A DNA stretch of 64,000 nucleotides from Paragordius varius. Lineage: Eukaryota; Animalia; Nematomorpha. The stretch's first letter is position 1. Each line of letters begins with the position of its first letter. Both the position numbers and the translations under genes were made by a program. Location: contig OZ176055.1 in the NCBI GenBank assembly GCA_964247055.1, positions 8,742,001 through 8,806,000 of the forward strand, read 5' to 3'. The notes under the pieces were generated by a model. It saw only the letters and a program-made list of their open reading frames with translations. It did no database searches and was not told the DNA's origin. Below, piece after piece: positions 558 to 61,926 of the stretch.

Positions 558-2691
558 TTATCTACAACCACATCCTACCGCAACCATGTCTTGATAATTT
601 TTAAGGACAACTTTTTCATATTCATCCAAATATAGCATAGAGATGGGACTCAACTCTGTAGCTACGCAACATACCGTAGGAGCTAAATTACGGTTAACCG
701 AATTGACGAGCGTTTGAATTATGGCATGATTAGTGGAATTGAGGTGGTCAGATAGGGGAAACGGGCAATCCCCTCCACAGAAAAAAGCATGGTACCCAGG
801 AGGGGCTACAATCCAGTCGTTCCATCCCACATCGCTGAAATCAACGTAAAGCGGGTGTCTCCTACAATTGGCTGGGCCATATTTTCGTCTGTGCTTACGC
901 ATAGTAGCAAATTCAGAACCTTCGAATGTTTTTATATTGCGTTTACTACGAGCATGTGTGTTGTGCCCTAGCTTATCATCATTATCGCTATTGGCTTGAG
1001 TATTAGGATCATGATGGAAAGTAAGTAAGAAGGGATCCTCAGACGTGTATATAACCGCGTGGCTGTTTGAAACTGTTTGATTTTGTGAAGTTAGCGAGTC
1101 ATGAGAATGATTAGATTGATAAAATTTTGAGTGATGTACATCAAAACATTTTACATGGGATGGAACAATGTCCAAAATGAAGCCTTTATTGTGATCTGGA
1201 TGCAAGGACCAATCCTCGATAGATTGAGTTACATCAAAAGATTCCCAAGCAAACGCATTGGTTAAATGCATGAGTTTAGAATCGACCAATTTGACATCTA
1301 TAAATTTTTTGGGTAGCAAGGGTTTGTTATTCAAGGTATTGTTTATGAATGTTTGAGCTTTTGGCCAATTTTCACGGCTTAACACTTGATAAAGGTCTAG
1401 GCGATAACTCATGAGCTGACTATCATTGAAACAAAACGGTGGTACAAATGTATTTTTGTGCCAAAACAAATTGTATAGATAAAATCGTATCTCAGCCGCC
1501 ACAAGGTTGGGTGGTAGCGTAGAGGTATTGTAATGTATGTAACGGCTGTAGGAGGAAAATTCGTTTTGCACTAGTTCTTTTGGATCAAACTCTACATCTA
1601 AACAGTTAAAGAAAATTTTACTATAAAATATTTTGGTTTTAGAATTCTACAATAATTTTAAAAGGTCGTTTTAAAATTAAATAATTTTAATGCCTTATAT
1701 TAAAACCAAAAAAAATATTCATAGAAGTAAACAGATATTTACCAGTTTCGTAAATGGTGTAAGCTTGGTTCGCACCATTTTCCGACAATTTATGTAATCG
1801 ATTTGGCATGGGAAGATTGTATATATTATCATATTGCTCAGATTGAATTAAATATTGAATCATGGGCGATAGGGTTGTTTGATTCTGTTCGCTGTTATCG
1901 AGTAGCAATTCTTCCATTTTCGCTGACTGAGCAATGGCTAAATTGTATTTGGCCAGCTGAATTCGATATAATCGAACAAGGTATTCGGGAATACGGATAT
2001 AATCACTTCGTATTCTAGGTTTCTTTCCTATACCCAGACGCTTTAAGAGCACGTTGGCCGCTTCAGTTATCTTTGGATCATTCTTAATTTTGGTAGATGG
2101 TATAGATAATTGTTGTTGTTGATGATGAGTAGTTATTGAAGTTTCATTCGTTTTTGGAATAATGTTCATTATGTTTATGAATTTGGATGGTAGGGGTCTC
2201 GATATTAAGGGCGGTTCTTCGTGAGCCGAAACGAGTGGCAAAAATATTGACCATATTTTTGTGGAACTCCAATGTAAGATGGAATCCAGTAGGTGATTAG
2301 AATTTTGTAATTGTTGGGCATAAGTATTTTGTGAGCTATTATTGACCTTATTAGGACTTTGGAGGGGTACCGTTACGCAAATTATAAATACCATTAGGAT
2401 GAGAAAGAAGATAATCTCTAACCCCTTATTGCGATGATTGGTAAGGTGTGGTGAATAATGTGTTTGAAAAACGGTGGTGGATAAATGATTTGAATAGTTT
2501 TCAAAAGATGAATTTGGAATTTTTTCGCGGTGGCCACGGTAAGTTTGGTGGTGGGCACTATTGTTTTTGAAAAAATGGTGGTTTATAATATTATTATTGC
2601 GTTTATTCTTATGAATGTTGTGGTTTATAGATCGGATTTGTGTAAAATATCGTTCCATAACACGCAACTGTTGATATTGATCTTCTCCCAT
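558..2691 (-). CDS. BMP2/4: Bone morphogenetic protein 2/4 (decapentaplegic) preproprotein, 2 exons, ~662 aa
   Basis: Exons 2691-1743 and 1597-558, with a 145-nt phase-1 GT-AG intron (1598-1742) joining ...[14 protein letters not shown]. Furin sites RSKR and RKHRRK precede a 7-Cys TGF-beta domain: [25 protein letters not shown]...[14 protein letters not shown]...CC...GCGCR*. Confidence 0.96.
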
Positions 2692-21222: not shown

Positions 21223-24200
21223 TTAAAGCGGTATTTTGCGAAAAATGGAAGTTTGCAAATCATTTATGCGGGAACTAAGCTCTTGTAGTGCTTTATATTT
21301 GGCATTTAAGGCGTTTTCATTAACACTAGTTTCATGATAATCAAGGAAATTGTTAGGTGGTTTAGGTGGTAAGTTATTAGATGCGGATTTTTTATTGGGA
21401 TTTTCAATTAATTTCCCATCTACTCTAATGTAAGGTGGTACAGATTCATCATCATTCTCAACTGTTGTATTGTTTGAATTGTTGTCTGGTATCTATAAAG
21501 AAAAAGATAAAGAAACATAATAAAGCTCATAATTTGGAGATAACTTTAGAATATGCAATGAAGTCATATTTGAATATTGACGGCCATTTAATAAAAAAGA
21601 TAATAGGAACAGTCAAATTCTAACTAATCAATAAAATACTTACAAAATAATTTGCATAAAAAAAGATACGTGTATGTACAATAAAGTAAACACCTACCAA
21701 TATTTTTTAATTGAATCTATACTACATCCCTGAGGTAAACTATCCAAAATAATAAAATAATATAAAGAAAAGGGAGATTGCAATAGAGACTTTTTAATTT
21801 ATCAATTTTATTGCATCGCATTCAGCCTATTAGCATAAACCAACGTATTCAAATGTTCACGGACATTGTGTAAAAAAGCATAAAGCAATCAGATTCAAAG
21901 CGGTAAAATAGCACAAAAAAGGTGTTACATTGAGACTAATTTTAGAAACAAAAATCGCAAAAACTAACGTTGTAAATCATGATTATAGGCATTTTTTACG
22001 CAAAACTAAAGTAAAACCAACCAAAATTAGAAGTTTTCCGATTGGGTCTATCTTACATTCCTCGGGCAGGATACCATCTAAAATAAGGGAAACCAACAGC
22101 TTTTCAATCTGTGCTATGCGATCTTGTCCATGCACATTCAATCTATCAGCAATGAATTCTAACTTTAGCCTTTTATACGGTTTAACTAACGTGCTCATAA
22201 GCACTTGAGTCCGTATATTTTTAAGCAATTCTTCAACATGTTCTCTTATGAAAGCATCTTCCATAATTGTTGTCCGAGTAATTGGTTGTTCTATACAGAA
22301 TATATTATTTAAAAATAAAGACATAGAGTAAAAATAATTTGAAAATCATCATTTTTTTATTATTGCCTGTTGTTTTGGGTTGCAAAATATGGACTGTAAA
22401 AGTTGGTAAGACATTTAATTCTATAATTCAAAGTTTCCCATTTTATAGCGAAAATATCAAAAATCAAATATTATTTTCTTTATAAAAAAACATTTGTCTT
22501 CTAGTTTTTACGTTATATAATTTATATATAATAATTGCTTGTTAAATTTGTATAATAGATATATTATTGCGATAACAAAAACAATTTTTAGTAAAATTTT
22601 AAAATATGGGTGGAAACGTAATGTATTGGCTAATCTAGGTATTAATTTTTTCGAAAAATATAAATCATAAATTTGAATATATTTTTTATTTTCTCAGTAT
22701 TTATACACAATACCCCATTTCCAGATTCATTGAAACACCTGTTAATCGAAAGTGTAATAGGATAATTGTTTTATAAAATAATAAATTTCATACATGTATT
22801 TTAATATTTACCATGCGTTTTTTATCAATATTCAATTTTTCCCGAAAAAATAAATTATAATTTCAAAAGAATAACCTTTCAAAAAATGATAAAACAAAAT
22901 ATTTTTAAATTTAACTTTACATTAAAATAATTATATTACAAAAACCTGATTGAGACGTGGAGGAAGCCAAGGTATCGTTATTTAGCACAGATTCAAACTT
23001 AACAATGTCCCCATTTTGATATGCATCGACCAGATCTGTCATAGCAATAATTTCAGGGTCATCTTTGTATGGTTTAGTTTCCTGGATAATGTACAACATT
23101 ATTTTGTATGTTATTATCAATAAGATACCTATAAAATTAAAAAAACTTATCAAAAAAGTTGGAATTTTCGTAAAAATAACTTTCGTTCATGACTTTTATT
23201 TGGTGTTATTTATGCGCATAAATGATAAAATTATTTTTTTACCTTTGCAAATATTTAAACACAATTTAAATCTAGCCATGTTATAACTAATTATTATAAA
23301 AAATTTGCACGGAATTTTTTTGCAAAAGAATTTTTTAAGACAAGTGAACGATGTAAACTTTGATTGTAAATATTAACCGTTCTTACTCCATATCATGATA
23401 ACAAAATTCACAATTAAAAAAATAAAATATTATGATCTCTAATAATTCCACTAAACACAACCAATATTTATGAATAATAAATCCCAGCAAAATAAAAGAA
23501 TATCAATAAATATTGTATATACTATCAACAATCATATTAATATTATTACATTTTCAAAATTAATAAAAGTGAAATATAATTGATATCACGTTATAAACAT
23601 AGGTGGTAAAAATGGTTATTTTTATTTTTTGGGTTTAAGCATTTGATGATTTCGCTAAAAGATGTGACAATATATATAGATCTAACTATATGCCAAATGA
23701 CAGGATTTTTAAAGTTTTAAGGGAGTGTTAAAATAAAAAAGTAAGAATGAAATATAGTTACCTGAGATTCAAAAGGGTTAATATCACTTTTGAGTAACAT
23801 GTTTGTTAGGACTAAATATTTCAGACAAGTAAGTCGTCTGATACTCCCTGCTTCGTCGTAATTTTTAAAGGCCTCAAAAAAATCGACAAACGCTTTCTCA
23901 TACTCCTGTTCACGTAAGTGCATTTTGCCTTAAAATATTGTAAAAATGTGTAATCTAACCTCCACATTCCCTTATAACACCCATAATTAATGGGTGAGGG
24001 ATGGCTGATTTGATTTGCAAACAATTTTCGTAAAGTTGTTTCAATTTTTTATTGTTCTTCTGTGCCGTGTATACTTGAATCTCCAAAGCGTATATTTCCA
24101 GGAGTTGAGTCCCTAAAAACATTTTTAAAAAAAATATACCCTTTTTCAAATCATCTTCTCCCTCATCCGTTAAACAACTTTGATGGAGTTGACGAATAAT

Positions 24201-26831: not shown

Positions 26832-27175
26832 ATGGCAAAATTTGTTAATAAGCTAACGGGTTTCGTTGTTAATAAAGGACCTGTATATGCCAAAGGTAAA
26901 AAAATAATTTATTTTTAGCATCCATAGATTATGCTACGCCTAGATTAAAAACATTTTGGCATTACGCCAAAGTTGAAATGAAACCGCCCACATCGGGAGA
27001 TATTTCGATTATACAATCAGATCTGAAGCAGCTCATGGCCAAATATAAAAATGGTCATGTAAGAAATCTGACAATACGGGAAGTTTGGTTGAATTCTTTG
27101 GTAGCTCTCGAAATTGGCTTTTGGTTTTTTTGTGGCGAAATAATTGGTCGAAGGAGTTTCTACTATAACGTTTAA
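26832..27175 (+). CDS. ATP5MG: Mitochondrial ATP synthase subunit g, 2 exons, 106 aa
   Basis: Exons 26832-26895 and 26919-27175 with a 23-nt intron. MAKFVNKL...ASIDYATPRLKTFWHYAKVEMKPP...WFFCGEIIGRR matches the subunit g pattern PRL.TFW.YAKVEL.PP and GEIIG.R. Confidence 0.93.
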
Positions 27176-51999: not shown

Positions 52000-53889
52000 T
52001 TAAATGTCACTTTACATATTTCCCGTTAATTTTACCAGAAACTAATTGTCAATATTAGCTGTTGAATAAATAAATTATTCCTAATACTTTGCGAATTCCC
52101 CAACTAAAGTGTGAAATAAGCACTTATAAAAATGTATACTAAAAACGCTTTTATTAAATAAAAAACAACCAGTTTGCAACATTTCATAATGTTTTGCCCA
52201 AAGATTGCGATCATTCGATGCCGTTAAAATATTGATTGGAGTGGGATTCACACATTGTTGGGAATAATGTAAAATGTGTTCAAGTGATTTTTGTAATTGG
52301 TTCTCATCATATATTTCTAGACGCCACATCTAAACAAAAATTTGTCAGAAAAAAATCATTTTTTTTCTTGTTAATTAGAATAATGCAAGTAAAAAAGTAT
52401 AAAACCTTTATTACATTAATTATTTAATTGGTAAATAGAGAAAATTAATGTATATTTATATATATTAAATTATCGCCCATTTATTTAAATATACACTTTT
52501 TAACGTGCAATTAGACCAGAGAAGGGGTGTCCAACACAAATGGCTTCGTTTGAATATGGACATTAAAAAATATTTTATTAAATTTTAAACATAAGAAGAC
52601 TTTAATACCATATTTATTAAACATTTTTTTTGCTAGTTCATTGCCAAATTCTGGAAGAACTACTAAATTTATTTTAACATTTTTTGCTAGTTTTTTGCCG
52701 TTTATTGCCAAATTCTGAAGATTTATTCGGAAAATTTGTTAAAAAATAATTTTACTTGGATTTCGCAAAAAATTTTATATTTGAAATTCTAGGGGCTCAG
52801 AAATATTTTCAAATGCCGCGAGTTGTCAACCCCTGAATTAGAACAGTAAAAAAATATTTGCTTACAGAATATTTGCAATTTTTCTCGTTATACAACTATT
52901 GGAAACATTTTTTATTATTTTTCTTGATTATTAAAACTAAAAATTAGAGTAATTATATCTAATATTAGCAAAAAAGTTTTTTATTACAAAATTAAATATC
53001 ATTAATATATCATTTACAGTTTTAATTCACCCTTGAACAATTCAAATTTACCTAAATTTCATTTTTTTTAAATTAAAAATAATATTTGTAATCTTAAATA
53101 ATACTTAATTTATTTTAGGGTGAATTTGAATTTTTTAAGGGTGAAGTTGAATTGTAAATGTTATATTTGTCTAAATTCGAAAATCGACATATAACCAAGA
53201 CACATAATAAAGTCATATATTTAATATAATTTTTAATTACCTTGTTATTGCACATCACAACAATGTATTCGGAGTTATATATTGGAAGTTTAGTAATAAA
53301 CGACATTTCATCTTTCTCAAACATAGGAACGCGACAATTATTAAATATAAGATTGTATTGTGAAAAACATAAAGGATGTTTAGACGCTTTTTCCAGCATA
53401 TCATACCTTTTATTAACGACTGCCTTTTTAAAATCCTGAATAGCTTTAATAGCTAAAGCTATAGTTCTAAATAAAAATTATATAAATATATGAATACTTA
53501 ATATATTCAGCATCGTTATTATACCGAAATGTGGGAAACATGATACCAGGATTAGAATTTATTACTAAACTGTTACGACATTTTAGATATGCTTCTTCTA
53601 ACCACCAATCGTATAACTAGATTAGGCATAAATAAAAAACCCAATTGTCCTCGGTTTTTACTAATGAAACAAGTTTTGACTGAAGTTCAGAACCATACTC
53701 GACAAATCTCTTGATAAAATTTTGTGAAGGACAATCACTAAAAGGTTTTAAGCTTTCAACTAATCTTTTTTCAGTTTTTTCTAACGAAGGTATCGGCAAT
53801 CGAGGCAAAACTGCTGCCTCAGAGTGAAAAAAATTGGAGCATCTCGTTATTATTAAGCCATGTGATGTAATACGATTGCGGATAAACAT
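45756..53889 (-). CDS. CRAT: Carnitine O-acetyltransferase (choline/carnitine acyltransferase family), 12 exons, ~623 aa
   Basis: Exons 53889-53641, 53616-53498, 53466-53241, 52329-52170, 51206-51028, 49770-49667, 49337-49206, 48839-48717, 48178-48033, 47717-47644, 46604-46464 and 45974-45756. Motifs [22 protein letters not shown], catalytic YEHTVAEG (CrAT-like rather than the ChAT EHSPFDG), [44 protein letters not shown]. Confidence 0.92.
46880..47290 (+). mobile_element. RTE-like C-terminal remnant in a CRAT intron
   Basis: SETWALT near 46890, RW near 47060 and [10 protein letters not shown] near 47230, in shifting frames. Confidence 0.55.
49814..50037. mobile_element. Foldback-like MITE family B copy
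   Basis: Three ATTC.AATTCACCCT units on the left, AGGGTGAATTTGAATTG on the right, and the shared core GGGCTTATATAACTCATCATTAATATGAA. Confidence 0.75.
50142..50413. mobile_element. Tc1/mariner-like MITE family C (272 bp); related pieces at ~38355-38620, ~46625-46720, ~39535, ~39646 and ~63915-63960
   Basis: TIRs CAGTAAAAATTGAAATTATAC / GTATAATTTCAATTTTTACTG with TA on the left flank. GGACAAAAC...AAAAGACAACCATA recurs in other copies. Confidence 0.75.
50620..50980. repeat. Diverged ~200-bp tandem duplication
   Basis: TTTATAAAACTTAAAC...AGTAATGTTGTAT...TTCCCTTAAATAACTAAACTAAACTTTAAA occurs at ~50620-50770 and ~50820-50980. Confidence 0.75.
51231..51740. mobile_element. Foldback-like MITE family B copy with a greatly expanded left arm
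   Basis: More than ten degenerate AACAATTCAAATTCACCCT units over 51240-51530, then the family core, then GTGAATTTGA units at ~51705-51735. Confidence 0.8.
51966..51996. repeat. (AT)15 microsatellite
   Basis: Direct reading. Confidence 0.9.
52517..52835. mobile_element. hAT-type MITE family D (CAGGGGTGTCCAAC-type ends); related copies or fragments at 58675-58955, ~60023-60305 and 20977-21007 (reverse)
   Basis: Left CAGAGAAGGGGTGTCCAACACAAATGGCTTCG, right GTTGTCAACCCCTG. Flanks AATTAGAC / AATTAGAA are a 7/8 TSD. CCAACAC(A/T)(A/T)ATGGC..GCGGGC is shared by the other copies. Confidence 0.8.
53006..53165. mobile_element. Short foldback-like MITE family B copy
   Basis: CATTTACAG...ATTCACCCTTGAACAATTCAAAT and AGGGTGAATTTGAATT...TGTAAATG. 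Confidence 0.7.
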
Positions 53890-54507: not shown

Positions 54508-57265
54508 AACCAACGTGGTAGGTAAAATTGGAAATTCTCGAATCGAGTGGAAATTTCTGATGTGATTTTAAGTTTTTAATTTTAAATATCAGAAAAATAA
54601 TGCAAATGTAAAAAATTCTTTATGAATTTAGCTAACCCTAATATGAAATTATAAACTGTTACAAAGCATATTAAATTACACACAACTGCGATTCAGCTAA
54701 ATTAAATTTTAGGATCGTGGATTTTTTATAAACATGTTTATTAAATTTAGTGTCCCGACCTTAATTTCGGTAAGACCCCCCATTCAAATTTCGATGGGAT
54801 AAATGCTAAAGTACAACTGAGTTTTAATTCTCCTATCTGTTTTGTACCACTACGCTTTAGAATGGGCGTTTTAAAAAAAAATAAACCAATATTCTGATAA
54901 ATCACGTTTCAAAAAACGTGCAACATACAGTTTTAATATTTTTGCGAAAACGCTGGATGTGGCCGAGTCGTCTATTAGTTTATAAGGTAATTTATAAAAA
55001 GATGTGTAATGATAATATTATGAGAGAATGCGACCCATAAAGGGATATGAATATCTAGTATACCCATTTATGCTGGCTTATTCACATTATAGTTGGTCGA
55101 TTGGTACCACAGTAGTGTATGGAAAAAACAAAATGTGGAAATCAAACAATTTTTTCCCTTACAAAATGAGGCGTTGAAAATCCAATAATATTTTTATTTT
55201 TTTACCAAATAATTAAATTTTAATGGCAATAAAATTTTCACAAACGTTTATTTTATTAATAGATGTATGACTGAATTTGCACATAGTTATGCACATGATA
55301 TAAAAAAAGTTTTTTATTTAATCGCATTCAATATTTACGCTATATGATGTACATAAAAATTCGCAATTATTAAATAACACTTCATTTTATTTTCTTTTGT
55401 CCTAATTTACCTTTTGGGGTATTTTTATGTCTTAAAGCTCAATCATAATTAAAATACATTTGGAGGTTATTTTAATCAAAATTTAAATTATCAAACATAG
55501 TTCTCATGTATTAGATAATAAAGCTTATAGTTTTTTTTATAGTTTTTGACTTCTAGAGGTTAATGTTGGGCAGCTCCATACGATTGAAACGAACATCTGA
55601 TATTAAAATAAAAATATATCAAGTTTTGGCTGGTAAATTTAGCAAAGTGTTTAAGGTTATTTATTTATATTTTTAACCATAAAACATATTTATTTGCCTG
55701 TTGCAATAGCGATAAAAACATCTATGGAAAAAAGTTTGAGATGATGAATTTGTTACAATTTTAAGTTTTTTGGGAAAATAATGATGTATAATAAGCTTAA
55801 TTTTTAATCACCTTGTACCTTAGATACTTTTTAAGATCAAATTTGTAATATTTCTAAAATATAAAACCAGGTAATGGAGTGTTAAATAAAGCAATATAAA
55901 AATTTATTATAATCCTGTGTGTCAGATAGATAATAATTCACCAACCACATATTGATTTTAGAATTTTCAAGTTCATATTTATTTTTATTCAGTTTATGCG
56001 GGGGGAAATGTCATTTGAGATATATTCGTAAATAATGTGTATAATAAAATAACCACACCAATACTTCCCAAAAAAGGGTGTTTTTCAAAGATTTTATAAT
56101 AATAAATAAATGGCAACACATGTTTAAAATACAGTATCGGGTGATATTGAGGCCATATCTATTTTAAATTGCTAAAACATTATTCAGTTTACATTCTGTT
56201 GCTATGTTTTATATAATTCGTTACATATTTGATCAAAACTGTATTTATTTGTGAAAATTTTTAAAACGAAACTAAAAAAACTAAAATCTCAAGCATGGCT
56301 ACTGATATTGTAAAAATATAAATTACAGACATGAGCTAATAGCGCTCATAACTGTATATATTTCATCTCCCTTCCCTAATGAACACAAATAGTTTTTGTA
56401 TTATAAGATTTAAGTTAAAAATGACACCGCTATCTAACCCATCACCCCCTTAATATTTTATTAAAAGTTTTAATAGATTATACAAGAGTCAGGATGATTG
56501 GATCACAAAACATTCAAAGAGCATTTTTAATATATATGCCTTTTTAGTGTAATTTTCAGTCATTAAGCAACATTTAGCTTTATGTTTTAACAATCAATAT
56601 TTATTATTTTAGGTGATAAATCAGTGGTTCCCGAAAGGGAGAAATAGAAAATTTTGAGGTAAAGCCTAAAATTGATGTTTATAAACACAATGTTTACTAT
56701 TATTATTTGATAAATGGTTTATTTGATATTATTTAATTTAAAATTTAAATAAAGTTCCACTATTGGGTATAATCAAATTGCATAGTTAGTTAAATTCAAA
56801 AATATTGTATCTATTTTTTATTTTATTGGGTCTTACTAAATATTATAATATAACAAATAAACTATTGAAAAGCTAAAAATACAAATGTTAATAATTCGGT
56901 TTTTATCTTACTTTTTTGGGAGAAAAAATAAGGGGAAATTTTTTTTCGATTTGGTGAAACCTAATTTAAATTATATTCTTCAAATATATCTCAAAAAATT
57001 AAAAGTCTTAGTTTGGCTAAAATCGCGTATTCAATAAATTAAAGGAAAGTAAATTTCAAAGATTTTAATTATCAATACCTTATTCCTATTTTTGTACCAT
57101 ATAAACCACAGATATACCAATACTAAAAGATTGGTTACACACTGAAATATCATTATTACAAATATTATTATAAAATTAAATTTATTTATTCGTACAAAGA
57201 ATAGTGTTTTGCCTCTGTAAAAATTTTATCTAAACTGTTTATTTAACAAAGAAATGCAGGCAAAT

Positions 57266-59620
57266 TTAAAAAATTAAATTTTCGGATGTACACATATCAC
57301 TTTTGCAACAGGTAACTTGCACATCAGACCCAACATCTGCACACAAAGCCTTTTCAAGATCTGGACTTAGGCATCTACATATATTAATTTACAAAAAATA
57401 TATTATCTTTTAATTTATTTCACTAAATATTATGCTAGCACATCACATTTGTAAAAGTCAGAGTTGTTTCGTAAAGCCAAATATGAAAATTTTCGCTTTT
57501 TTATGTTTTTTGCGAAAACGGATTTTTCTACCTGATGTCGAGTTTTTGTCAAAAAACTTATATGACCACCCTGTTTGATTTCCATTCACATAGTCTTAAA
57601 AATTATTTTAAAAGCAATTAAATATTTTATGAAGGTGTATATTATTCTTATTGACATTTAAGGTTAAGAATTGATGATTTAGCAATGTTACACCAAATGT
57701 TTACCTTAAAATGCCGTTATTTTTTTCTACTAAGCTCAACTGACAATCGAACTATTACTACTCATCGTGATATATCATCTAATCTATATATTTTTACATA
57801 TAAATTTAAATATATAATAATAATCTAAAAGGCAATATCGATTCGAAAACTACTCGTGACATATGGTTTAAACTCAACAGTTTAAGTTAATGGCATAAAA
57901 CAACAATAAACATTTCAAAAAATTGTATTAAATTTAAACAATTATTCACATACCTCCATTTTTATTCTTTTTACAGCTGACGACGGCCATCCTTATATAG
58001 TTTCCAAACCCGACACTTTTTATTCATTATTTTATACACGATTTTAAATGAATTGGCATAAACTTTTTTAACATCATATATTTTAAAAAAATTTGAAAGT
58101 ACTTTTTAGATATTGTATTATTTAATAAAAATTTCGTTTTTCAGGTTTATTTAGAAATAATTAATTATGTCGTAAAATTGATTTTTTTTCTGCGAAAGAT
58201 CAAGTGAAATTTTGGTGTATACTGAATTCTTGGATTAATTTTATATGTTTTCCTTATTCGTTAATTATATTGGTAAAGTAAAAACACTTTTTTGAGGTGC
58301 TTTTTAGATACTTTAGCTCATGGGAGGATGAAAAATACCATAAAACGTATATTCACAAATTATTTAAACACTATATACAAGTTCATTAGGATCATATATC
58401 GTCGATGATAGTTTTATTCTAAACTAAATAAAAATAACGGTATTTAACGGTAAAATTCAGGCCTTATAGACCTATTGATGCATCTATAAGAAAAAAACAT
58501 TAAATACAGTATGCATTTTAATGGTTGCTTATTTCACAATATATTTTTCGCAACACAGTAGTGTATGGAAAAATCAACAAAATGTTGAATAAACAAACTT
58601 TTCCTTTCTTTTTTCAATAAACTACTGTGTAACAATTTGCCCCACTATAGTGTGAAATAAGGAACCATTAAAATTAGGGGTGTCCAACACATATGGCTTT
58701 GCGGGCTGCATTTGAAATTTATATGGGCATACTTAATTTTTATTATATTTCCCAAATAAATTTGTAAGATGCGAATACAAATTAACATTTTTTTCTAGTT
58801 CTTGCGAGTAGGATGAATTTTATTTTAGCAAAAATGTATAGAAAAAATATTAATTTTACAAAGATTTTGTTGTGGGCATATTTAGGCAAATTGGATTGCT
58901 AATTTTTCTCTGACCTCACATGAGGTTTCAGAGGGCTACGCCTTAAACAACCCTGATTTAAAAAATTATCCAGCATTTGTGGAAAAATTCTTTAACAAAA
59001 TATTAGGAAATAGATTATAACCTATCCAAACACAATCCTCTTTAATTTTTACAAATGTATAGTGTGGAACATAGCAAGTTGTTTTTGAAGTTTTTACGAC
59101 TGGTCAAGTTTTTTTTTCAATTTGATTATAATGTTACCCTTATTTTTTCTTTTTAGAAAATTTAAATTAGTGTTATTTATCACACTATAAGATTTAGTGT
59201 TTATTTGCCTAATTTTAATCATAAAAGTAATAAGACACTAAACCCATTTTGTTTAAAACGGTTTTTTCAAAAAAATTATAAACTTACGCAACTTTAGCTA
59301 CAAAATAATTATTTTTAAATTTAAATCCCACCTAAATGCTAATTTATTTCAAGCACAATGATTAATTTTAATCATCAAAAAACTCAATTCTCTGATATGT
59401 AGCTTTAAAAAATAAATTATTTATTAGAAAACCTGTATTGAAGATTCTTTTTGAATTTGAAAAGGGCACACGATCCATCTGTAGAACAAAAGCCTAAATC
59501 TTGCGGGTGATTACTTTTACAAATTAAATCTAAGCGTTAGATAATTATAATACTATTTGTGATGGCCGATATTTGGAATGAGAAAATAAGGAATAAAATG
59601 AATGATATACAATGTTTCAT
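57266..59620 (-). CDS. Secreted 90-aa three-finger (activin-receptor-ectodomain/LU-like) protein, 3 exons
   Basis: Exons 59620-59554, 59529-59433 and 57374-57266 (GT-AG, phases 1 and 2) give MKHCISFILFLIFSFQISAITNNLICKSNHPQDLGFCSTDGSCALFKFKKNLQYRCLSPDLEKALCADVGSDVQVTCCKSDMCTSENLIF*. It has a signal peptide, 8 mature Cys, a CC-x4-C box, and AATAAA (plus-strand 57238-57243) just after the stop. Confidence 0.8.
58521..58668. mobile_element. Small MITE family E (~148 bp); related pieces at ~55075-55170 and ~52095-52122
   Basis: ATGGTTGCTTATTTCACA / TGTGAAATAAGGAACCAT (17/18) plus a perfect inner pair ACACAGTAGT / ACTACTGTGT. Confidence 0.75.
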
Positions 59621-61926
59621 CGCTAAAATTTTAAAGGAAAAAGTATAATTTAAGGATATATCCCCTTTTGATTAATTGATTATACAATTTGTCTTTATTT
59701 ATTTATTTATGTATTTATTAAAGGAGAGGCCTTGATAGAATTTGATTTGCTCAATGTTTAATGTCATTTTAAAATACAAACAAGGACAAATATCAAGAAG
59801 CAAGTGTCATACATAGTTTAACAAATATTGACCGATAGAGATATAAGCTACTCAATGTAGGCTAAAGGTCAAATTGTAGAAATCAATGTAAACTGGAGGT
59901 ATAGATTGGGCTAAAACATCGTGCTTTAAAAATAAAATCTTTACATACTATTTTATTAATGAAATTACCCGATTTCAGGGAATAGTTTCCACATTAAAAA
60001 ACTCATTAAATATTGTCTAAATCATGGGGGGATCCAACACAAATGGCTTCGCGGGCCGCATTTATGGATCAAATCCGGCGGGAATTATAAAATAATTTAT
60101 TAGATTTTAGACCTCAGACTGTAAAACTATTTATTTTAATATTTTTTGTTAGTTCCATGCCAAAATTCGGAAAAATTTATCATAAAATTTATTTAAGAAA
60201 CAAATTATATCAAAAAATTGTTCGAGAAATTAAATTTTTTTTAGATTCCGTAAATTTTTCATTTGATTCCCGCGGGCCGTAGAAACATTTTTAAGGGCCG
60301 CACGTAATTTTTTAACGTATTTTATACATGAGCGTGCAAAATGTGTAAAAGACAAATAAATTAATTTTATAAAGATGATCACAACTTTTAAACAATAAAA
60401 AATGGAACCGAAAACGTTTTGGGACCCGTTTTGAAATTCAAAAAATATTAAAAACATCTTCAATACTGTATTGTATATAATCTATTTTTTATAAATCATG
60501 ATGTGCATTTTTGTAGAAAAGTATCATACAATACTACATTTTTGTAAATACTTATGAGACAAAATAAATTAATGAAACTATCTTAAAATATTTTTTTTAA
60601 TTATTTACTACCTAAACTCACTATTAAAATAAGTAAAATAAATTCTATATCAAAATAAAACCAAAAATATTGTTTTTTATTTTTGCATTTTTTTGTCATC
60701 TGGTTTATAAGTATAAAAAAATTTATACTGTTTTATTTTGGATTCTTACATGATTAGGAATTATCAAGTATATAATTTATGCAAAATAATATTGGAATAG
60801 TGGATTAAGGATACAAAAAATAATGATGAAATTTGAATTATTATGGTTTATTATCATTTTAGGAGATATTTTCAATTTATAAATAGCCTAAAATCGTATA
60901 GTTTGGGTTTCTATAAAATTTCAGGTCAAAAGATGGCGTTTTTCTTTTAGTCTGTTTTATGACAAATTAATATTTGTATTGGGATTTGTACGGATTGTTG
61001 GTTGATAACTTTTTGCCCAATTTCGATTTTCTCTCAATATTTCAAAAACTAGGTTATCAACAAATAAAAAATTTTGCGGCAAATGAATACGCTGGTCATA
61101 AGCTATCTCGTATATATATATATATTTAATAATATTTGAACTTATGTTAAAACTGCGATCACTTAAGATAGAATTTTGTAGAAAATAATAATTTCAAAAA
61201 TCCTAATTTTAGTTTATCAATCTTTTTCGTATATTTTATATATCATTTCTTGCGTTTAATTATCTCACATTATTTCCAATTAAAGCTTTAAGATTAAAAA
61301 CAAATTTGTTAATAAAATAAATTACAAAGAAAAACGTAATCAAGTACAAAATTTAAAATTTAATTACACTAATTGACATTTTATATTTATGTAAACCACC
61401 CTTTGTAGACAAAAGTACAGTAAAAAAAGAAAACACAAAACACCACATGCATATGAGGAATAATAATATGCAAAATAAACCACACACCCCATATTGAAAA
61501 TTTGAATATCCGTACACGAATTTAACAAAAAAGTTAAAAAAAACTATGTTGAAACCACATTTCCTCCCAACTTACAAAGTTATTTTAGTATAATTTTTTA
61601 GCCGGGTGATATTGAAAGAGAATCGTTTCGAAAATACCTGGAAAAGGAGGGTGTAATGGATGTTTTAACACAAAGTTTTTTTTTTAATTTTATATCTCAC
61701 TAATGTAGTTTTGTACAAAATGTATGAACTTGAGGAAAGACCTGCAAATCCAATAAAGTATAATATATAAATTTATTTAATATTTTTCTATTATATAATT
61801 AATTTATAAAATAACAGATATATAAAAGATGAATTGAATAATTTGTTAGAAAAGGTCGGCGGTAGTTGATTATGGGACACTGAAAAATATGGAAATAATT
61901 ATATGCTCAAAATACAGAAACTTTAC

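Follow-up and report, generated by a model that had tools for sequence, protein, structure and literature searches.

A probable unannotated gene for a secreted three-finger mini-protein in the genome of the horsehair worm Paragordius varius, with possible affinity to TGF-beta type I receptor-type modules

Background

Does a 64-kb stretch of the genome of the horsehair worm Paragordius varius (contig OZ176055.1, positions 8,742,001 to 8,806,000; hereafter, the window) contain an overlooked gene for a small secreted protein related to the ectodomains of TGF-beta/activin type I receptors and, if so, does this protein belong with the receptors or with the generic Ly6-type proteins that share the same three-finger architecture? 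The question stems from a first-pass annotation of the window, made by reading the DNA alone, which proposed a 90-residue, cysteine-rich product that is encoded around a minute first intron and lacks both a membrane anchor and a kinase. On the basis of gene anatomy and comparison with other genes of the same genome, we conclude that the window very probably contains an unannotated three-exon gene for a secreted three-finger mini-protein of 90 residues. The explanation that we consider best, with a probability of about 0.55, is that this is a real gene whose product would be a secreted single three-finger domain, an offshoot of receptor-type modules acting as a soluble binding module; the mature protein would comprise one such domain of ~70 residues, after removal of a signal peptide of ~19-22 residues.

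Results and discussion

Structure of the candidate gene

All coordinates are positions in the window unless a contig is named, and a slash within a sequence marks a splice or cleavage boundary. The candidate gene is located on the minus strand, which was read over 57200-59700; its three exons join in frame to a total of 273 nucleotides (nt), that is, 90 residues and a stop, as established from the minus-strand reading and the translation of each exon. In the direction of transcription, the elements are:

59554..59620, minus strand, exon 1: start ATG, 22 codons plus 1 base (67 nt), signal peptide
59530..59553, minus strand, intron 1: 24 nt, GTA...CTAAC...TAG, phase 1
59433..59529, minus strand, exon 2: 97 nt, fingers 1 and 2, Cys1-Cys3, including C-S-T-D-G-S-C
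57375..59432, minus strand, intron 2: 2,058 nt, GT..AG, donor CAG/GTTTTC, acceptor TGTAG/A, phase 2
57266..57374, minus strand, exon 3: Cys4-Cys8 (finger 3 and the CC-x4-C box), 7 further residues, TAA stop
57238..57243, minus strand: AATAAA polyadenylation-type hexamer, 22 nt 3' of the stop

The peptide encoded by exon 1 consists of an n-region (MKH), a 12-residue hydrophobic core and the sequence QISA/ITN, with a likely cleavage site after QISA. Exon 2 contains no in-frame ATG, and three codons further upstream its frame runs into a stop, which means that this exon has to be spliced to an upstream exon; the signal-peptide exon is only 24 nt away. The intron between them includes an in-frame TAA and is positioned two full codons ahead of the first cysteine of the domain. 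Exon 2 stops after the second base of a codon, at CAG/GTTTTC, and intron 2 interrupts this Arg codon (AG/A) immediately ahead of Cys4; the first base of exon 3 completes the codon, and five cysteines follow, the last motif being CC-K-S-D-M-C. The spacing of the cysteines in the domain as a whole is C-x10-C-x5-C-x12-C-x9-C-x10-CC-x4-C. Both the minus-strand reading and the exon translations bear out the 90-residue product of the first-pass annotation, with its 24-nt first intron and in-frame TAA, and the cysteine spacing, the CSTDGSC and CCKSDMC motifs and the seven residues (TSENLIF) ahead of the stop all read as claimed; the AATAAA that had been said to lie nearby is located at 57243-57238, 22 nt past the stop.

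Absence of an anchor and a kinase

Past the last cysteine, the C-terminus reads T-S-E-N-L-I-F and then stops; because it has no hydrophobic tail, a glycosylphosphatidylinositol (GPI) signal and a transmembrane segment are excluded by reading. The GS-box pattern of the receptors does not occur in the window, and its only matches in the genome are at C6:9888303, in a receptor gene (R1) that is described below, and at C1:11924518. Downstream of exon 3, no open reading frame (ORF) of at least 35 residues with domain character is present before the ATG of the next gene on the minus strand, which starts at 53889 and encodes a carnitine acyltransferase-like N-terminus. With a stop seven residues past the last cysteine, no GS box in the window and no suitable ORFs, the view of the product as a secreted protein without transmembrane segment, GPI tail or kinase holds. 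The hallmarks of a whole type I receptor (transmembrane segment, GS box and Ser/Thr kinase) are all missing from the candidate, as are those of BAMBI, namely a profile match and a membrane anchor.

These same observations bear on the possibility that the transcript is longer and that the three exons are only part of it, together with another first exon or with additional 3' exons that would supply an anchor or other domains. The transcript ends are not fixed by RNA, an alternative in-frame acceptor is found 9 nt inside exon 3, and the statement that no usable GT donor is available requires a qualification, in that one GT (GTACAT) is present within the codon of the last cysteine. This GT, however, is the only one past the cysteine box, it is a poor donor, and its use would destroy that cysteine. 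The stop is directly followed by AATAAA, exon 2 is only 24 nt away from the exon that supplies the ATG and signal peptide, and the lack of a GS box in the window and of domain-like ORFs before 53889 argues against downstream receptor exons as well. A larger transcript thus appears very improbable.

Membership in the three-finger superfamily

The candidate has the four-core-disulfide cysteine framework together with the C-terminal CC-x4-C box within ~60-90 residues, and in its gene, the signal exon is followed by a phase-1 intron and then by the two exons that encode the domain. This arrangement is the archetypal structure of LU genes, and the ectodomains of type I receptors are themselves 10-Cys LU domains (PMC6600238). 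By cysteine pattern and gene structure only, we judge the candidate to be a member of the three-finger/LU superfamily. It would be a reduced one: the finger-1 (2-3) disulfide is missing, there being eight cysteines in all and a single Cys where C-x-C-x2-5-C is expected, and the Asn that follows the last Cys (C-N) is replaced by Thr. The absence of the extra CxC..C pair and of the terminal Asn, leaving the 8-Cys core of short three-finger toxins, had been recognized at the outset and is evident in the exon translations.

Receptor type or Ly6 type

In six-frame scans of the genome searched (110.6 Mb, 44 contigs, ~27% GC), the Activin_recp model (match threshold 20.9 bits) matched only two loci, R1 (C6:9.89 Mb) and R2 (C1:12.5 Mb); the QVR model produced seven matches, all away from the candidate locus; and UPAR_LY6 (LU) and BAMBI (PF06211) matched nothing anywhere. 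R1 (C6:9892795-9893075) is baboon/ALK4/5/7-like and contains the PFVC motif; a GS box follows 4.5 kb downstream. Another receptor-type locus was found through the TDG pattern discussed below:

C3:12535546-12537650, minus strand, R3a/R3b: tandem 10-Cys type I receptor-type modules, ~1 kb apart

No kinase ORF is present in the 10 kb downstream of R3a/R3b, where the next gene encodes citrate synthase.

The best discriminator found between the receptor type and the Ly6 type is the internal intron structure. In R1, a phase-2 intron interrupts the ectodomain within the codon directly ahead of the finger-2-closing Cys, which is Cys6 of the 10-Cys modules (...A-I-Y, AT/G, then Cys), and the same phase-2 placement is seen in the candidate, R3a and R3b (AG/A, GG/A and GG/C, respectively, each followed by Cys). 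In both position and phase, the internal intron of the candidate matches all three receptor-type modules (R1, R3a and R3b) and none of the four QVR genes, in three of which the internal intron is in phase 1, 9-10 codons upstream of that Cys, and in the fourth in phase 0, 16 codons upstream. The phase-1 intron ahead of L-x-C is common to the receptor and QVR groups and does not discriminate between them.

The second and weaker line of evidence is sequence, above all the C-x-T-D/N-G-x-C turn between fingers 1 and 2, which is present in the candidate (CSTDGSC), in R1 (CITDGQC) and in R3a (CATDGSC). Genome-wide, the DNA pattern for C-x-T-D-G-x-C occurs at seven sites, compared to one in the reversed control, and these include the candidate, R1 and the C3 locus. 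The turn of the candidate is identical to that of R3a in 6 of 8 positions (E=2e-4) and to that of R1 in 5 of 7 (E=0.008). Exon 3 shows 28% identity to the corresponding second exon of R1, exon b (E=0.002), and in the candidate, as in R3a and R3b, 9 residues separate the two cysteines past the intron. When compared to hidden Markov models (HMMs) built from the sequences of this genome, with shuffles that kept the cysteines fixed, exon 3 yielded p=0.022 for the receptor type and 0.049 for QVR, and exon 2 yielded p=0.013 for the receptor type and 0.35 for QVR, the exon-2 test being partly circular because R3a was found via the TDG pattern. A profile of two receptor second halves retrieved only itself from the genome. 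Throughout, the resemblance to receptor sequences was measured only against the receptor genes of this genome.

Owing to the phase-2 intron position and the C-x-TDG-x-C motif, a receptor-type origin is favored and, provided that the gene is real, we regard it as somewhat more likely than not. The type I receptor likeness asserted in the first-pass annotation accordingly stands in part: the TDG turn and the intron placement are shared with receptor genes of the same genome, and the Pfam search of the exon pieces is blank.

The competing possibility is a generic secreted Ly6/uPAR-type protein, akin to SLURP or to toxins, whose target would be a different one, such as a nicotinic receptor or an ion channel, and might reside in the arthropod host. 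The 8-Cys core of the candidate is that of short three-finger toxins, and in a sequence search of the PDB, exon 3 gave non-significant toxin matches only, the best ones being to the third finger of snake long alpha-neurotoxins (E ~7, non-significant), and exon 2 gave a chance match. The combination of a signal exon with two exons and a phase-1 boundary is the generic LU layout (PMC6600238) and is seen in the QVR genes as well. Comparison by hhalign and BLAST with a small set of LU exon pieces from this genome did not separate the receptor type from QVR and, accordingly, shows no preference for the former. Single-LU secreted proteins are common in invertebrates, and 14 three-finger genes have been counted in one hairworm genome (PMC13719153). 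Against this possibility speak the match of intron position and phase to three of three receptor-type modules and none of four QVR genes, the TDG turn common to the candidate, R1 and R3a, and the CC of the candidate where QVR has C-x-C; furthermore, the QVR, UPAR_LY6 and toxin Pfam models miss the exon pieces, too. On balance, a generic Ly6-type protein seems somewhat unlikely, and derivation from a receptor-type module remains our preferred reading.

Two further loci that surfaced in these searches are noted here. R2 (C1:12508530-12508955, minus strand) is a single-exon Activin_recp ectodomain, with an ORF containing a transmembrane-like hydrophobic stretch ~500 nt downstream; the nearest GS-box match is 584 kb away, and there is neither a tandem partner nor a kinase within 20 kb. 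R2 may be a BAMBI-like or otherwise kinase-less receptor, or its kinase exons may be farther off. A further site, C-N-T-D-G-K-C, is found at C1:4516623; the open frame around it has 36 codons and just two cysteines, and the site may be a chance match or may belong to an exon of some other gene poor in Cys.

Compatibility of the gene model with the genome and the probability of chance

The 24-nt intron has counterparts of similar size in other genes. In the same window, the gene for ATP synthase subunit g requires a 23-nt GT..AG intron at 26896-26918 (plus strand) to maintain its frame, and the gene for COP9 signalosome subunit 2 (CSN2) contains a 31-nt intron at 23929-23959 (minus strand, donor GTTAGA), between ...RECGG and KMHLRE.... 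Elsewhere in the genome, R1 contains a 29-nt intron, and two QVR genes contain introns of 24 nt and 29 nt. Four of these five tiny introns have the form GTA..TAG, as does intron 1 of the candidate, the one in CSN2 being GTT..AAG. The long intron of CSN2 near 22945 has the donor CAG/GTTTTT, a counterpart of the CAG/GTTTTC donor of the candidate. Because conserved genes of this window likewise have tiny introns and CAG/GTTTT donors, the gene model fits this genome.

The GC content is 0.33 in exon 2 and 0.37 in exon 3, compared to 0.254 +/- 0.055 in nearby 100-nt windows, and falls within the range of known exons in the vicinity. Each of these two exons is present in a single copy in the genome, and the surrounding DNA is at single-copy depth. 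High-copy repeats are located at 58505-58838, within intron 2, and at 60008-61000, with a summed contig depth of 100-2,700, compared to ~5 in the flanks (run X3, see below). The repeat at ~58505-58838 shows many joints in inverted orientation, as an element resembling a miniature inverted-repeat transposable element would.

Could the candidate have arisen by chance? The 64-kb window contains the C-terminal (exon-3) cysteine pattern once, and 100 Markov-simulated windows do not contain it at all; an analytic estimate, which assumes a Cys-codon frequency of ~0.025 and a stop frequency of ~0.085, gives ~0.01 sites per window and ~18 per genome. The pattern C-x-[ST][DN]G-x-C has a single occurrence on the minus strand of the window. 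A chance origin would further call for an open frame that is located within 3 kb upstream, fits the reading frame and contains C-x(8-16)-C-x5-C, for a suitably placed donor, and for an ATG and a signal peptide attached via a tiny intron typical of this genome. By our own reasoning, as opposed to the output of a tool, the joint chance expectation is ~1e-3 for the whole genome. A chance origin of the candidate gene is, on this estimate, unlikely.

Database searches, expression and variation

Several results weigh against the reading of the candidate as a genuine gene of receptor-type descent. Apart from the partial circularity of the exon-2 HMM test and the failure of hhalign and BLAST to tell the receptor type from QVR, as indicated above, exon 3 gives no BLAST alignment with exon b of R3a. 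The cysteines of the CxCxxC motif and the Asn after the last Cys, both missing from the candidate, are kept by type I receptors and most LU domains. The six-frame scan with Activin_recp misses the candidate locus, and hmmscan against Pfam, run on each exon piece separately, found no family at E<=10; this exon-wise test is insensitive, given that it fails on the 10-Cys module R3a as well, and the exon pieces of R1 score 27 bits each. The Pfam models Activin_recp, BAMBI and UPAR_LY6, with which a comparison had been suggested in the initial proposal, did not recognize the exon pieces. An exhaustive HMMER search of 1.84 billion proteins with the 35-residue exon-3 piece detected no orthologue at the exon level, and a protein search of the genome with exons 2 and 3 detected no paralogue. 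Three small runs guessed to be RNA (X4-X6, mapped as contigs of 19-30 Mb) show nothing on 56000-61000, which is not evidence of silence. The AATAAA alone is weak evidence in a genome with 27% GC.

The search for paralogues that had been suggested along with the original prediction leaves the candidate as a single-copy locus. A search of the ESM Atlas with each exon piece gave no usable match. Co-folding of the two exon-encoded halves as separate chains produced a score of 0.03, which speaks neither for nor against the candidate. The six HMMER matches to exon 3 with E<=1e-3 are long bacterial repeat proteins with dockerin or cohesin domains; we judged them spurious and rejected them because their scores sum many C..C..CxxC repeats of a different cysteine pattern.

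The run X3, labelled as organism B, turned out to be low-coverage, near-identical DNA and gives no cross-species comparison. The differences listed for it are 59617 T>G, which changes Lys2 to Gln in the signal peptide, one at 59624 in the 5' flank and two in the 3' flank.

The lack of RNA matches in X4-X6, of an orthologue or paralogue and of a family match, along with the loss of the conserved Asn and two cysteines, is also what speaks for a non-functional element, be it a set of short frames that happen to line up in AT-rich DNA or the decaying remnant of a receptor gene that was duplicated in part; moreover, at 27% GC, an ATG, a TATA-like element and an AATAAA arise easily. For the first variant, the joint chance expectation given above, ~1e-3 per whole genome, is low. 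For the second variant, the difficulty is that eight cysteines and the frame are intact over three exons at only ~28% identity to the nearest receptor module, a combination that neutral decay would not be expected to preserve. The raised GC content of the exons is at odds with a non-functional element, too. We consider a non-functional origin to be improbable.

A proposed function

Under the preferred reading of a functional, receptor-derived gene, the signal peptide would be removed and the remaining LU domain of ~70 residues would be held together by four disulfides (by analogy, Cys1-3, 2-4, 5-6 and 7-8). With no GPI signal, transmembrane segment or kinase, the protein would be released from the cell. 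The gene would represent a minimal secreted offshoot of a TGF-beta type I receptor-type module that lost the extra disulfide of finger 1; we consider descent from such a module most likely because the layout and the TDG turn match receptor-type genes and not Ly6/QVR genes. Once released, the soluble module would bind a partner through its fingers. The expression of the candidate, its three-finger fold, its disulfide pairing and its target are, to this extent, what we infer from gene structure and cysteine pattern.

The leading candidate for the target is a ligand of the TGF-beta/activin/BMP family or a complex of such a ligand with a type II receptor. If derived from a baboon/ALK4/5/7-type ectodomain, the protein might act as a soluble competitor, following the logic of BAMBI minus the anchor. 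Ectodomains of the ALK4/5 type bind ligand poorly in the absence of a type II receptor; given this requirement, interference with the ternary complex is likelier than a simple ligand trap. A 9-residue S-P-D-L-E-K-A-L segment of the candidate is located where BMP type I receptors have a ligand-contacting helix, which is a resemblance only. A trap or decoy function towards TGF-beta ligands is put forward as a hypothesis only.

The window also contains a BMP2/4-type gene (558-2691, minus strand), which consists of two exons separated by an intron of ~110 nt (GTAAAT..TTTAG) and encodes a highly conserved mature domain that includes ...GCGCR. It is 55 kb away from the candidate, with CSN2, ATP synthase g, a Na/K-ATPase paralogue and the acyltransferase in between, and its co-location with the candidate is given no weight.

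As matters stand, the candidate is a plausible but ordinary secreted three-finger gene. If expressed, it would be another real gene missed by standard gene finders owing to a 24-nt intron, and a minimal, anchor-less addition to the few kinase-less receptor-type three-finger genes in the horsehair worm. A more far-reaching scheme, in which a secreted single-gene protein consisting of the type I receptor finger domain only, in a minimal 8-Cys form, would, with the kinase-less modules, serve as a trap or dominant-negative for TGF-beta signaling, be it in the worm itself or, during parasitism, in the arthropod host, is in our view doubtful. If it were true, TGF-beta/activin signaling would be tuned in a new manner, by means of a soluble type I receptor-like module, which would matter for a parasite that reshapes its host.

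Comparison with known systems

Among the systems with which the candidate can be compared, the short- and long-chain three-finger toxins of snakes (Toxin_TOLIP) are similarly secreted, consist of ~60-75 residues and have an 8-Cys core without the finger-1 disulfide. The Cys4-Cys5 spacing differs, however, and the PDB matches, which cover the third finger and the cysteine box, have an E-value of ~7 and do not indicate kinship; snake toxins are an offshoot of vertebrate Ly6. SLURP-1/2 and the QVR/Ly6 proteins of insects and hairworms share with the candidate the combination of a signal peptide with one LU domain, the three-exon gene and the CC-x-x-D-x-C box (PMC6600238). In contrast, the QVR proteins of this genome have 10 cysteines, an LKCYxC start and C-x-C where the candidate has CC.

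BAMBI would share with the candidate the principle of a type I receptor-like ectodomain that has no kinase and could interfere with signaling, but is membrane-anchored and contains 10 cysteines, whereas the candidate has no transmembrane segment. The R3a/R3b locus is similar in being a kinase-less receptor-type module with the same intron position and phase, and with CATDGSC in R3a versus CSTDGSC in the candidate; the difference is that R3a and R3b are two tandem 10-Cys modules with the C-N ending and the candidate is a single 8-Cys module. Finally, compared to R1 and type I receptors in general, the candidate has 8 rather than 10 cysteines, Thr in place of Asn and no transmembrane segment, GS box or kinase, and Pfam detects the exon pieces of R1 but not those of the candidate. 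Nevertheless, the two have in common the three-finger cysteine framework, the C-x-TDG-x-C turn and the CC-x4-C box, as well as a phase-1 intron two codons before the first Cys and a phase-2 intron before the Cys that closes finger 2.

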